From the sequence record MF360958.1: a DNA stretch of 64,000 bases; one strand, written 5' to 3'. This document shows positions 23,671 to 30,177 of this stretch, in pieces. Numbering within the stretch: the stretch's first letter is position 1; every line of letters starts with the position of its first letter. The notes below the pieces were generated by a model. The model saw only the letters and a program-made list of their open reading frames with translations. It was not told where the DNA came from and did not search any database. The translations under genes were made by a program, and so were the position numbers.

Positions 23671-23698
23671 AAAAGCCCCTCAAATGAGGGGCTTTTTT
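23671..23698 (+). terminator. Intrinsic terminator
   Basis: GCCCCTC-AAAT-GAGGGGC plus T6; identical core at 29473-29490. Confidence 0.9.
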
Positions 23699-23764
23699 AT
23701 GTCTTTACATAAGTTAAGATTGTCATATTATTGAATAATATAGATAAGACTAATAGGAGGTAAA

Positions 23765-25331: not shown

Positions 25332-25946
25332 ATGGGAAAAATACGTGATATTGAATTAAATAGATTTCCTTATAAAATATTGGAAATAGAAAATCCTAGC
25401 ACGCATCAATGGTATCTTGCTTTGTGTAAAGAACCCTATTTGCTTGAATATAATCAAAATCCTAGTTTTGTATTGCTTGAAAGGATGTGTAAAGAAAAGC
25501 CTCATATAATGATTAGAGATTATCATCATCTATTATCTGAAGATCAAAAAATGACAGCAATATATCATAATCCGGTTATGATTAGTGCTATTGACAATCC
25601 TGATGAAAAAATTCAATTATATGCTGTAATGTTGTCTTCTTATGCTATAACCGGTATTAAAAATCCATCAGAGAAAATTTTGTTACAAGCTGTTAAACAT
25701 TGGCCTGATAGTATACTGCGTATTAAAAATAGAAACATTACTAAAGAAATGATATTAATTGCTTTAGAAAAGCGCTGGGATAAGAATTTTTTAGATAGGA
25801 TTGAGAAAAAACTAAGACTAAAACATATTCCAAAAGATCATTGGTTTAAATATGAATTGAAAAAACTTAAAGTAAAAAATGGTCCAATGAGTGATAATCA
25901 TGTTTATTACATAAAATATAAAAATGGTGGCGGAATTGACACATAA
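25332..25946 (+). CDS. DUF4116-like repeat protein (family A)
   Basis: IDNPDEKIQLYAV repeats; FKYELKKLKVKNGPM. Confidence 0.7.
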   Translation: MGKIRDIELNRFPYKILEIENPSTHQWYLALCKEPYLLEYNQNPSFVLLERMCKEKPHIMIRDYHHLLSEDQKMTAIYHNPVMISAIDNPDEKIQLYAVMLSSYAITGIKNPSEKILLQAVKHWPDSILRIKNRNITKEMILIALEKRWDKNFLDRIEKKLRLKHIPKDHWFKYELKKLKVKNGPMSDNHVYYIKYKNGGGIDT

Positions 25947-26442
25947 ATGGTATAATAAAGAAAAAGCAATTGATAAAGATAGGGTAGAAATTAATGGAGA
26001 TTATATAAAGAATTATAAAAATCCTAGTGAAAAATTACAACTAATTGCTGTTCAAGAGAATGGTTTAAGTATACGTTTTATCAAAAATCCTACTAAAAAA
26101 GTGAAATATAAAGCTGTAGAAAATCATGAAGCTGCTATTGGTTGGATTGATAATCCTAGTAAAGAGTTACAATTATATGCTATTAAACATTCAATATTAG
26201 CATTACAATGGATTAAAAATCCTTATTATTGTGTGAAATATAATGCAATATTACAAGATTGTTATGCAATTAAATATTTACAATCTCTTGAAGATGAATT
26301 ACAACTTTTAGCACTTCAGTATTGTCATAATAAAGATAAAAAAGATATCTATAATTTCATTATTCATTTTTACACACGTGATAATGAAGAACGATTTAAT
26401 CATCAAGTTAAAAAATTAAAACTAAAGTACGGGCCTTTTTAA
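25924..26442 (+). CDS. DUF4116-like repeat protein (family A)
   Basis: KNPSEKLQLIAVQENG repeats; FNHQVKKLKLKYGPF. Confidence 0.7.
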   Translation: MVAELTHKWYNKEKAIDKDRVEINGDYIKNYKNPSEKLQLIAVQENGLSIRFIKNPTKKVKYKAVENHEAAIGWIDNPSKELQLYAIKHSILALQWIKNPYYCVKYNAILQDCYAIKYLQSLEDELQLLALQYCHNKDKKDIYNFIIHFYTRDNEERFNHQVKKLKLKYGPF

Positions 26443-26499: not shown

Positions 26500-26910
26500 A
26501 TGACAAAACCAATAATATCTAACAAAGATCTGAATTCAGTCATACATGAAACTTATAGAAAAATACCCCGAAGTGAAATTGTGGAAAATATTTTAGCTAA
26601 TCCATATAATATACAATACGTAGATGATCCTGATGAGCAATTACAAAATATCGCCGTATGTGATAATGGATATGCTATACAATTTATTAAAAATCCTTCA
26701 GAACAAATAATTATTGAAGCTATTGATAACGAACCGCAAAGTATAAAATATCTTGATTATCCTTCTGATAATATTCAATTAAGAGCTATTGAGCATATAT
26801 GGAGAATATCATTTTATGATATGATGATGAAAATATTTTCTCGGGATGATGAAGAAAAATTTAATCATGATATTAATAAAATGAAGATAAAGTACGGTCC
26901 AATGGGTTAA
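26500..26910 (+). CDS. DUF4116-like repeat protein (family A)
   Basis: IQFIKNPSEQIIIEAI repeats; FNHDINKMKIKYGPM. Confidence 0.7.
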   Translation: MTKPIISNKDLNSVIHETYRKIPRSEIVENILANPYNIQYVDDPDEQLQNIAVCDNGYAIQFIKNPSEQIIIEAIDNEPQSIKYLDYPSDNIQLRAIEHIWRISFYDMMMKIFSRDDEEKFNHDINKMKIKYGPMG

Positions 26911-27978: not shown

Positions 27979-28058
27979 ACATACCATTCTCCTATATTGT
28001 TCAAATAATATAAATACTATTAGAATAATTAACAGAATATTATAGGATAAAGTTTATA

Positions 28059-28799
28059 ATGAGTATTAAGTGGAATAATGTAAAACAACAAGGTCAATCC
28101 AAAGTAAAGAAAGCAAGCCCTACAGTCGATCTAGGTATTGGTCCTACCGAACTGATAGCGGGTGACATGCAAGCAGGATTTTTCGGAGAGGTTTTAGCTT
28201 CCGAACTATTCACCGGTCCTGAACTAGCTAGTGAAATCAATCTCACAGCAGGTATAGCTCAATATGACAATGAACCATGGCTAAAGTTTGCTTATAAGGG
28301 AGAGATCCTATATGTAGCTAAGAAACCTTACAGACACACCGTTTCTTGGGATGATATACAAGCAGTAGATGCGGTATATGGTGGAGAAAATGATGCGGAA
28401 GTAGGTAAGTCAGGCTATAATTTTAAAGTACGTTTACTAAAAGGTGCTAGTAACGATCCTACCAGTTGGGATGACTCGGGTACTGATGATGAAGGAGCTA
28501 GTAATTCAAGATATGATCCTGTTGAAAGTATTGGATCTGAATGGAATAATTTAATTTATAAAGTTCATGAGTACAGCCCTGTTAACCAAGAAGGTTCAAA
28601 TTGGGCAAATTATACTGATAGTGATATTGTAGTGGGTAGTGGAGATGGTAGAGTTACATGGTGTCAAGAAACACCTAGCTACGATACTTCAAGACGTGTT
28701 CACCGTGGTAATTCTTCCTTGTCTTACTTCATTACCCCTACCTCGTCTTATTCCCCTTCTATTTGCGGCTGGCGTCCATGCTTAACACTGATCACGTGA
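28059..28799 (+). CDS. Virion structural protein, C-type-lectin-like fold, with DGR variable-repeat-like C-terminus
   Basis: TATAAATA 28009-28016; GPTELIAGDMQAGFFGEV, WLKFAYKG, KVRLLKG, GSEWNNL, WCQE, RVxRG...GWRP motifs. Confidence 0.7.
   Translation: MSIKWNNVKQQGQSKVKKASPTVDLGIGPTELIAGDMQAGFFGEVLASELFTGPELASEINLTAGIAQYDNEPWLKFAYKGEILYVAKKPYRHTVSWDDIQAVDAVYGGENDAEVGKSGYNFKVRLLKGASNDPTSWDDSGTDDEGASNSRYDPVESIGSEWNNLIYKVHEYSPVNQEGSNWANYTDSDIVVGSGDGRVTWCQETPSYDTSRRVHRGNSSLSYFITPTSSYSPSICGWRPCLTLIT
28695..28778 (+). other. Putative DGR variable repeat (VR)
   Basis: Hand count: 10 A in 84 nt, about 49% G+C, 24 of 28 codons end in C/T; fits A-to-N decoding of an AAC/AAT-rich template. Confidence 0.6.
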
Positions 28800-28878
28800 T
28801 CGCTATCAAGCGCCGATTAAGTCCGAACGAAGGTGAGGATAGGCACTTCTTGCTAAACTTTACTATGTAATATTGTTA

Positions 28879-28905
28879 ATGGGTTAGGTTTTGAGCCTAA
28901 CCCAT
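28879..28905 (+). terminator. Hairpin terminator
   Basis: ATGGGTTAGG...CCTAACCCAT followed by CGTTTT. Confidence 0.7.
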
Positions 28906-28998: not shown

Positions 28999-29466
28999 AT
29001 GACCACACGAAACCTTAACCGCCTTCTTTCAAAAGCTATTCGAATTGCTTCACAAGCACATGAAGAACAGCTTGATAAAGGTAATTCACCTTATATCCTG
29101 CATCCAATGCGCATCATGTTCCGTCTTAGAACAGACGACCCTGAACTTAACATGATTGCTATGCTTCATGATGTGATGGAAGATACTCAATGGACACTGG
29201 ATGATTTTATTAATGAAGGCTTCACTGATCGTGTTCTGAATGCTCTAAGGCTTCTTACACACAATAAAGATCATGTTGCCTATGAAGATTATATCGAAAA
29301 CATGTGCGATAATCTTGATGCTGTTAAAGTGAAAATGGGAGATCTCAAGGATAACTCAGATATCACACGGCTTAAAGGTGTGACTGATAAGGATATTGAA
29401 AGGATGAAGAAATACCATAAATCGTATCTTCGCCTTGACGAAGCTAAAGAAAAACTGGAAGGATAA
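28999..29466 (+). CDS. HD-domain (p)ppGpp hydrolase-like protein (Mesh1/SpoT-HD type)
   Basis: AHEEQLDK...PYILHP, AMLHDVMEDT, VKMGDLKDN. Confidence 0.8.
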   Translation: MTTRNLNRLLSKAIRIASQAHEEQLDKGNSPYILHPMRIMFRLRTDDPELNMIAMLHDVMEDTQWTLDDFINEGFTDRVLNALRLLTHNKDHVAYEDYIENMCDNLDAVKVKMGDLKDNSDITRLKGVTDKDIERMKKYHKSYLRLDEAKEKLEG

Positions 29467-29467
29467 T

Positions 29468-29496
29468 AAAAAGCCCCTCAAATGAGGGGCTTTTTT
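29468..29496. terminator. Bidirectional intrinsic terminator
   Basis: A5-GCCCCTC-AAAT-GAGGGGC-T6. Confidence 0.9.
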
Positions 29497-29501
29497 ATAG
29501 G

Positions 29502-29757: not shown

Positions 29758-30177
29758 CTATAGGTCATGTAGTTCATCAATGTTGACAACATTATACAGA
29801 CCCTCGTTATGTTTTACAACACTAGTGATAATGTTGGTATAGTTGGGTTTAAAGAATACTTTTGAGTATTGTTCTATTTCATCTTCATCAATACTTATTA
29901 TATCGTTAACCTTTTCAACAATCAATCCTAACAATGTTTCATGGGTATTTTCTGTAATAATGACCATCCCATTTTGAATTTGATTTTGAGCAAAAAACTT
30001 GGAAAGATTGCATAACCCAATAGGGGTTTGCCTGAAATAAGTTATTCCTTCAACAAACCATGGACTACCCGGTGCCTCGGCAATGGTTAAATCTTCAAAT
30101 TCTTTAATTTCACAAATATTTTGTATATTAATTGCAAATTGTTGATCGCTGATAGTAAATGTTAAAAATTGTATCAT
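29758..30177 (-). CDS. CheW-like protein
   Basis: FLTFTISDQQFAINIQNICEI...PGSPWFVEGITYFRQTPIGLCNL...GLIVEKVNDI follows the CheW pattern. Confidence 0.75.
   Translation of the reverse strand: MIQFLTFTISDQQFAINIQNICEIKEFEDLTIAEAPGSPWFVEGITYFRQTPIGLCNLSKFFAQNQIQNGMVIITENTHETLLGLIVEKVNDIISIDEDEIEQYSKVFFKPNYTNIITSVVKHNEGLYNVVNIDELHDL

Follow-up and report, generated by a model that had tools for sequence, protein, structure and literature searches.

Variable repeats of the diversity-generating retroelement type in gp486 of Salicola phage SCTP-2 and its two paralogs

Diversity-generating retroelements (DGRs) rewrite part of a target gene: a template repeat (TR) is reverse-transcribed with random bases opposite its adenines, and the cDNA then replaces the variable repeat (VR). 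Their action alters positions 1 and 2 of AAY-type codons (Y, C or T) on a fixed scaffold. In DGRs of the Bordetella phage BPP-1 type, the VR is followed at 4-34 bp by a hairpin with a G+C-rich stem of 7-10 bp and a 4-nt GRNA loop (PMC3240598). The DGR of Treponema serves several non-adjacent target genes, and for phage DGRs a survey of 372 elements did not expect remote targets (PMC5758913). DGR surveys begin from the reverse transcriptase (RT), and targets without a nearby RT escape notice; the largest metagenomic survey was indeed unable to detect targets away from the RT (PMC8144416). Here we analyze a 64,000-nt stretch of the genome of Salicola phage SCTP-2 (hereafter, the window) and describe in it a gene, gp486, whose 3' end has the character of a DGR variable repeat, as do those of its two paralogs elsewhere in the genome.

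The window is 100% identical to the SCTP-2 record, MF360958.1. The phage has a genome of 440,001 bp, infects a halophilic gammaproteobacterium and originates from an Italian solar saltern. A search of the entire 440-kb record recovered two whole-gene paralogs of gp486, both outside the window, which are ~85% identical to it in DNA and 83-84% identical in protein. The unit common to the three copies measures ~850 bp and comprises the promoter region, the gene body and the 3' untranslated region (UTR). We found no paper describing these SCTP-2 genes. The features on which the argument turns are the following (adding 372,000 to a window position gives the record position).

28059-28799, plus strand: gp486 (gene 486, PBI_SCTP2_486), an open reading frame (ORF) of 246 aa, annotated in the record as 'hypothetical protein'
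Record 345633-346373, minus strand: gp434, paralog of gp486
Record 66673-67410, minus strand: gp82, paralog of gp486
28695-28778, plus strand: VR-type segment of gp486, with 11 variable codons between 28701 and 28766
28767-28778, plus strand: G+C-rich end of the VR, codons G-W-R-P, in a position like that of the initiation of mutagenic homing (IMH) site

A first-pass annotation, made from the letters of the window, had proposed an orphan DGR-style variable repeat at the end of gp486, and the base and codon figures that it gave for 28695-28778 were all reproduced, namely the translation, 10 A in 84 nt, a G+C content of about 49% (48.8%) and a C or T third base in 24 of 28 codons. In the rest of gp486, 72 of 212 codons end in A. 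The segment is the most adenine-poor 84-nt stretch of the 64-kb window on either strand: stretches of this length hold 29.5 A on average (standard deviation 5.5), and those with at most 10 A amount to eight overlapping ones on the plus strand, all at 28695-28778, and none on the minus strand.

Comparison of the three copies reveals how this segment varies. Variable columns at codon positions 1, 2 and 3 number 32, 21 and 76 in the gene body (each of 210) and 9, 9 and 5 in the VR (each of 28), an enrichment of VR variation at positions 1 and 2 with p = 4.5e-4. The 18 variable first and second positions lie in 11 codons (residues 215, 218, 219, 223, 225, 226, 227, 231, 233, 235 and 236), and the codons between them are invariant. 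Columns with three states occur at 7 of the 56 first and second positions of the VR but at 4 of the 420 such positions of the body (p = 5e-5). Every one of the 44 codons found at the 11 variable sites in the three copies and in the closest outside relative (L018) ends in C or T, although 45% of the codons in gp486 end in A or G; K, E, Q, M and W, whose codons end in A or G, are absent, and third-position change alongside an amino-acid change is confined to two C/T transitions. The segment thereby combines the traits of a DGR variable repeat, with variation at codon positions 1 and 2, C/T third bases, an invariant scaffold and a C-terminal location, and the differences among the three copies have the look expected of independent DGR products from one AAY-rich template. 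No copy carries adenine at its variable columns, which rules out one paralog as the template for the others. The three paralogs also vary in the middle of the gene, in a second patch at window ~28470-28510 (residues ~139-150), where indels accompany amino-acid changes; this patch is without the C/T-only codon signature and looks like an ordinary variable loop.

The same figures bear on the view that no DGR was ever involved and that the pattern arose by ordinary point mutation, with the binding sites of three paralogs under strong diversifying selection. In favor of this view, the variable residues are the ones expected on the ligand-binding face, where amino-acid changes would concentrate, and relatives in jumbo phages without a nearby RT vary at these positions too. 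Nevertheless, such selection accounts neither for the uniform C/T endings and the missing amino acids nor for the scarcity of accompanying third-position change and the excess of three-state columns. Moreover, the variable columns match the template adenines of one homologous DGR at nucleotide resolution, as described below, and we consider this view highly improbable.

The relatives of gp486 include genes that sit inside complete DGR cassettes. Its 289 detectable homologs share a set of family-conserved scaffold residues (W201, Q203, R213, R216, G217, G237, W238, R239, P240 and L242), of which G237, W238, R239 and P240 are invariant or nearly so, and the positions between scaffold residues are hypervariable across the family. 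One homolog, P0033 (44% identity), has a bAvd gene and an RVT_1 gene directly downstream, and a TR is present at its locus, with 17 of 19 TR/VR mismatches at template adenines. Among IMG/VR loci encoding relatives, 11 of 48 carry full-length Avd and RT immediately downstream, the layout in these metagenomic viral relatives being target-avd-TR-RT. Six further cassettes have all their mismatches at template adenines (10/10, 12/12, 15/15, 17/17, 14/14 and 12/12), giving 97 of 99 for the seven cassettes pooled. Judged by the sequences of these cassettes, the gp486 protein family contains genuine DGR targets.

Of the 24 adenines in the template of one cassette, L016, 17 coincide with variable columns of SCTP-2 when the sequences are placed in register, compared with 8 of 78 other positions (odds ratio 21, Fisher p = 2e-8), and 10 of the 11 variable codons of SCTP-2 are adenine-templated codons in L016. 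The targets in L016 and L019 are 44-50% identical to gp486. Codons ending in C or T at the 11 sites, which make up 100% in SCTP-2, account for 126 of 132 (95%) in DGR-adjacent relatives and for 73 of 103 (71%) in jumbo-phage relatives without a nearby RT. The G+C-rich segment 28767-28778 is homologous to the end point of TR/VR similarity in L016, L019, L024, L027 and L043; an IMH can be defined only against the IMH* of a TR, and SCTP-2 has no TR, hence our term IMH-like for this segment. The DGR-specific part of the evidence lies at the nucleotide level only, in the restriction of change to positions 1 and 2, the C/T third base and the three-state columns.

Two other relatives are candidate targets without an RT: L054, on a 220,598-bp contig, shows C/T endings at 11/11 of the variable sites, with no RT within 6 kb, and L040 has 11/11 C/T endings, the conserved hairpin described below and no Avd or RT in the remaining 1.1 kb downstream. 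The contigs L069, L070 and L071, which carry the next-closest relatives, P0006 and P0007, all end 18-50 nt past the target gene, which is the usual behavior of assemblies at a TR/VR repeat or a hypervariable site.

Conservation does not stop at the end of the repeat, and five features describe the sequence that follows it.

28779-28846, plus strand: 3' element of 68 nt, comprising the last 6 codons, the stop codon and 47 nt of the 3' UTR
28790-28801, no strand assigned: perfect palindrome of 12 bp that spans the stop codon and does not differ between gp486, gp434 and gp82
28808-28848, plus strand: outer 7-bp inverted repeat around the compact hairpin, perfect in gp434 and gp82 and with one mismatch in gp486
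28822-28839, plus strand: compact hairpin of 3 pairs, tandem G/A mismatches, 2 pairs and a 4-nt loop (GAAG)
28879-28905 (to 28915 at the widest), plus strand: intrinsic terminator of gp486, a 12-pair stem followed by a T run

Within the 3' element only 3 of 68 columns vary among the three copies, versus 76 of 210 third positions of the gene (p = 5e-8), and the longest and third-longest invariant runs of the full alignment fall inside it. The SCTP-2 genome holds no other copy of 28779-28846 beyond the three. Since the terminator lies downstream of it, the element is transcribed 3' UTR and not a terminator; it has no match in Rfam either, and a role as terminator or known RNA was accordingly rejected. 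The compact hairpin, which the first-pass annotation had placed at 28822-28839, is indeed there, identical in gp486, gp434 and gp82, 43 nt after the VR end. It recurs 24-50 nt 3' of the homologous gene in L040, L043 and L050/L051, and in L043 and L050/L051 it accompanies complete DGR cassettes. When the five distinct sequences are compared, each of the 25 pair cells is a standard pair, two pairs show compensatory double changes, and the flanks are unalignable. We take the hairpin to be a genuine element that is specific to the family and goes with the target gene, and by analogy with described DGRs it may have a role in target recognition. Folded as single sequences, the downstream structures do no better than shuffles (z = +0.99, +0.76 and -0.70). 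With its 4-nt loop GAAG, five standard pairs, two G/A mismatches and distance of 43 nt, the hairpin departs from the rule for the Bordetella type (PMC3240598). The palindrome that the annotation had also listed exists and lies inside the conserved 3' stretch, but is otherwise unsupported as a DGR feature; it was not found in relatives. The cassettes L016, L024, L027 and L028 have instead a G+C-rich hairpin of 5-8 bp ~40 nt downstream. A search of IMG/VR for further VR-anchored copies of the SCTP-2 hairpin gave two matches, both unrelated high-G+C sequences, which were discarded.

Collectively, the proposal of an orphan DGR-style variable repeat is backed by the pattern among the paralogs, the homologs that are DGR targets, the coincidence with template adenines and the covarying hairpin. 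The generator itself was sought throughout SCTP-2. A blastn-short search of the full 440-kb record with the repeat matched only the three genes and no fourth copy, and an ungapped scan for a TR, scored on the columns invariant among the copies, gave a best non-self match of 46/95 over the same 440 kb, which equals background. Using the RT and Avd of L016 as queries, tblastn returned nothing from the SCTP-2 genome (best E-value for RT, 10). Profiles built from eight family-linked RTs and eight Avds, run unfiltered against the 3,077 six-frame ORFs of at least 40 aa of SCTP-2, gave best E-values of 0.34 and 0.47, respectively; as controls, the RT profile scored 1e-150 on held-out loci and still detected RT fragments, and the Avd profile scored 1e-25 to 1e-57. 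Likewise, none of the 541 annotated SCTP-2 features is an RT. The first-pass statement that the window contains no TR or RT was therefore correct and extends to the entire genome, and one of its explanations, that the repeat is a remote target of a DGR elsewhere in the same genome, is excluded, there being no RT, Avd or TR in the 440 kb.

The reading that we prefer, and regard as probable, is that the repeats were made by a DGR and are now inherited as three fixed alleles, the generator being gone. The last ~35 residues of gp486 would then form a DGR-type variable repeat, and the DGR would have diversified the repeats either after the copies separated or in their source lineages and would since have been lost from the SCTP-2 genome. 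Instead of a single allele open to rewriting, the phage would thus possess three that are fixed, each for a ligand-binding face that very likely serves to recognize the host surface. Consistent with such a relic, the template-equivalent stretch contains seven differences among the copies that are not of the adenine type, and at synonymous sites the copies are 81-94% identical there, little more than in the gene body (69-87%). Recent overwriting of the copies from one template is, with so small a difference, unsupported.

A 149,876-bp phage contig in IMG/VR (L019, L044 and L057) carries three paralogs of the family and one DGR. The DGR-adjacent copy is a live target, with 10/10 mismatches at adenines, and a paralog ~90 kb away has drifted, having 33 nt in common with the TR and 22 mismatches, of which 9 are at adenines; because it pairs one live target with one drifted paralog, this contig provides a parallel for a relic. 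At two further IMG/VR loci, L039 and L046, an intact-looking Avd followed by a broken RT stands beside a gp486 homolog. In L039 the RT profile matches three separate ORF pieces, and in L046 one short piece, at a locus that also reaches the contig end. Both look like decaying DGRs in the gp486 family.

Several points weigh against a relic that has long been inactive, or against the evidence on which we have built. The 68-nt 3' element is conserved far beyond synonymous sites, which a long-frozen relic does not predict; this strong constraint implies either a recent loss of the DGR or a second role for the element. Third positions of the VR that differ among the copies (5 of 28), which represent drift since the last rewriting, are if anything below the level of the body (76 of 210, p = 0.06), and a divergence that is not above that of the body is compatible with rewriting that continued until fairly recently. 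The coincidence with the L016 template at the level of codons would also be expected if the same binding-site positions were under ordinary selection. The case is built on three copies and one metagenomic relative, and adenine specificity is not directly readable without a TR. Finally, the evidence from fold for a lectin-type domain, presented below, is weak.

Given the constraint on the target side, the three repeats might instead be live targets of a DGR acting in trans, from the host chromosome, a prophage, a plasmid or a co-infecting phage, and be rewritten during infection. The G+C-rich VR end and the 68-nt 3' element with its 3 variable columns and family hairpin are what such a DGR would use as signals, and the synonymous divergence of the VR does not exceed that found elsewhere. 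In the Bordetella phage, an IMH and a hairpin are all that a heterologous gene needs for the machinery to be directed to it (PMC3240598), and cellular DGRs with non-adjacent targets are known (PMC5758913). We scanned for a foreign template with two masked TR patterns, consisting of the window letters with N at the columns that vary among the copies; as exact patterns they had no match in IMG/VR, in 185,579 species-representative genomes or in Joint Genome Institute (JGI) metagenomes, collections in which the host strain, Salicola sp. PV4, is probably not included. SCTP-2-like strains were sought with a 25-mer of the 3' element, which found nothing in the collections scanned. The seven non-adenine-type differences imply, furthermore, that the copies have not all been overwritten recently from one template, phage DGRs are not expected to have remote targets, for lack of joint inheritance (PMC5758913), and a phage relying on a DGR from outside would, as far as we found, be without precedent. 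We hold this explanation to be unlikely. A related possibility is that the repeats and the conserved 3' element are kept as landing sites for a foreign DGR met in certain hosts or co-infections, and so are still rewritable; we rate it as rather improbable, and if true it would mean that a lytic jumbo phage outsources its tropism-switching machinery.

Between a relic formed within SCTP-2 and one acquired from outside, base composition and the closest relative provide the relevant comparison. The genes are richer in G+C (body, 39%; VR, 49%) than the genome around them (30.5% for the window). The VR scaffold of L018 is nearly identical in nucleotides, though the proteins are only 64% identical, and synonymous identity to L018 climbs along the gene, from ~20% at its 5' end to 80-90% immediately ahead of the VR, a rise that implies a mosaic gene with an exchangeable 3' module. 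Each copy, or its 3' module, could on these grounds have been captured separately by recombination from different DGR-bearing phages. However, the promoter region, the body (~85% nucleotide identity) and the 3' UTR are common to the three copies as one ~850-bp unit, which fits duplication within the genome, and the SCTP-2 3' element is absent from L018, so that separate capture appears quite improbable. The upstream end of the duplicated unit is the following.

28000-28058, plus strand: promoter region, alignable in gp486, gp434 and gp82, with 14 of 59 columns variable

An octamer within it (28009-28016), which may resemble the T4 late-promoter consensus, was dropped as a candidate late promoter, for the window contains 15 of them, no enrichment over the 20 expected.

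The kind of protein that carries the repeat can be approached through its homologs and its predicted structure. Profile searches matched gp486 to phrog_1062 (E = 3.5e-47) and to phrog_16120, 'virion structural protein' (E = 8.9e-37), and tblastn found matches to 171 phage records. A structural model of gp486 (predicted local distance difference test score, pLDDT, 89.4; predicted template modeling score, pTM, 0.86) matched virion structural proteins of phiKZ-like phages in BFVD, with a best E-value of 3e-22 and template modeling (TM) scores of 0.72-0.76. By profile and predicted structure over the domain, the protein belongs with the paralogous virion structural proteins of phiKZ-like phages (phrog_1062 and relatives). 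Homologs in other phages sit among tail-tip genes, and two carry an Mtd_N domain. On the strength of such sequence relationships gp486 is a predicted virion- or tail-associated protein in a family that includes DGR targets, and it would presumably act in binding to the host surface.

Among solved structures the model is matched best by TvpA, the variable protein of the Treponema DGR (2y3c; E = 3e-3, probability 0.82), followed by PvdO, formylglycine-generating enzymes (FGEs) and PorK, all of the FGE-like lectin class. Their TM-scores are only 0.22-0.33, and no PDB match has E <= 1e-3. The gp486 sequence had no hit in Pfam or PDB, and no sequence-level link to FGE-sulfatase, Mtd or TvpA was found. 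The fold evidence behind the first-pass description of the protein as lectin-like is thus weak; all the top PDB matches belong to this class, but at low TM-scores, and from the model a lectin fold (C-type lectin, CLec, or FGE) is plausible.

Other features of the window were noted in passing. The gene gp487 (28999-29466, plus strand), just downstream of gp486, has a weak, below-threshold match to HD_4 (E = 1.9e-4; score 21.6 bits, cutoff 27.2), a domain that occurs in RelA/SpoT-type hydrolases. The product of gp489 (29761-30177, minus strand) contains a CheW-like domain (PF01584, E = 7.9e-18, full-length match), and a chemotaxis adaptor domain of this type is unusual for a phage genome. An identical 30-nt hairpin followed by a T run occurs twice, at 23671-23700 and 29469-29498. 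Over 32 nt it is also a 100% match to a terminator annotated in an unrelated phage, Erwinia phage Ea9-2. Two adjacent paralogs with DUF4116-like repeats and the same C-terminal motif lie at 25924-26442 and 26500-26910 (plus strand).

SCTP-2 is a complete, cultured phage with a genome of 440 kb that has three DGR-type repeats and no DGR, and it documents either the loss of a generator with its products retained or dependence on a foreign generator. It also illustrates that the DGR signature can be recognized from paralogs alone. A comparison of 224 jumbo phages, with SCTP-2 included, reported no DGR-type lectin (FGE-like) domains (PMC7824862), a report that the homology described here qualifies. 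The same homology, between unexplained phiKZ-like 'virion structural proteins' and DGR targets, suggests variable ligand binding as a hypothesis for the role of the former.

How closely gp486 resembles the described systems differs from one to the next. With Mtd and the DGR of BPP-1 it has in common a C-terminal VR in a phage protein of the receptor-binding type, a G+C-rich VR end and a downstream hairpin with a 4-nt loop (PMC5758913 and PMC3240598); unlike Mtd, which was never returned in searches with gp486, it is without Mtd_N, and its hairpin, with 5 Watson-Crick pairs, two G/A mismatches and a GAAG loop at 43 nt from the VR end, is of a different build from the BPP-1 type. The TvpA protein of Treponema denticola (2y3c) is the best solved-structure match, albeit a weak one (E = 3e-3, TM 0.28), and in Treponema, in contrast to SCTP-2, RT and TR are in the same genome as the targets. 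Proteins of the phiKZ-like jumbo phages (PhiPA3, 201phi2-1, EL and Erwinia phages; phrog_1062/16120/3589) are homologous to gp486 over the whole domain in both sequence and predicted structure. They have the same C-terminal scaffold and several paralogs per genome, but these paralogs are far more diverged than those of SCTP-2 and their homologous codons are not C/T-only (73/103); for this family no DGR association has been reported. The metagenomic cassettes L016, L019/L020, L024, L025, L027/L028, L043 and L050/L051 contain a homologous target, 39-50% identical to gp486, with the VR in the same C-terminal segment, the scaffold R-x-x-R-G ... G-W-R-P, the same variable codons and a hairpin downstream of the target. 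Unlike SCTP-2, whose genome has none of these, they carry avd, TR and RT immediately downstream and show adenine-only mismatches, and SCTP-2, unlike them, has three dispersed target copies. Within the family, several fixed paralogs in large genomes and a single rewritable gene in smaller genomes seem to be alternative ways of reaching the same diversity.

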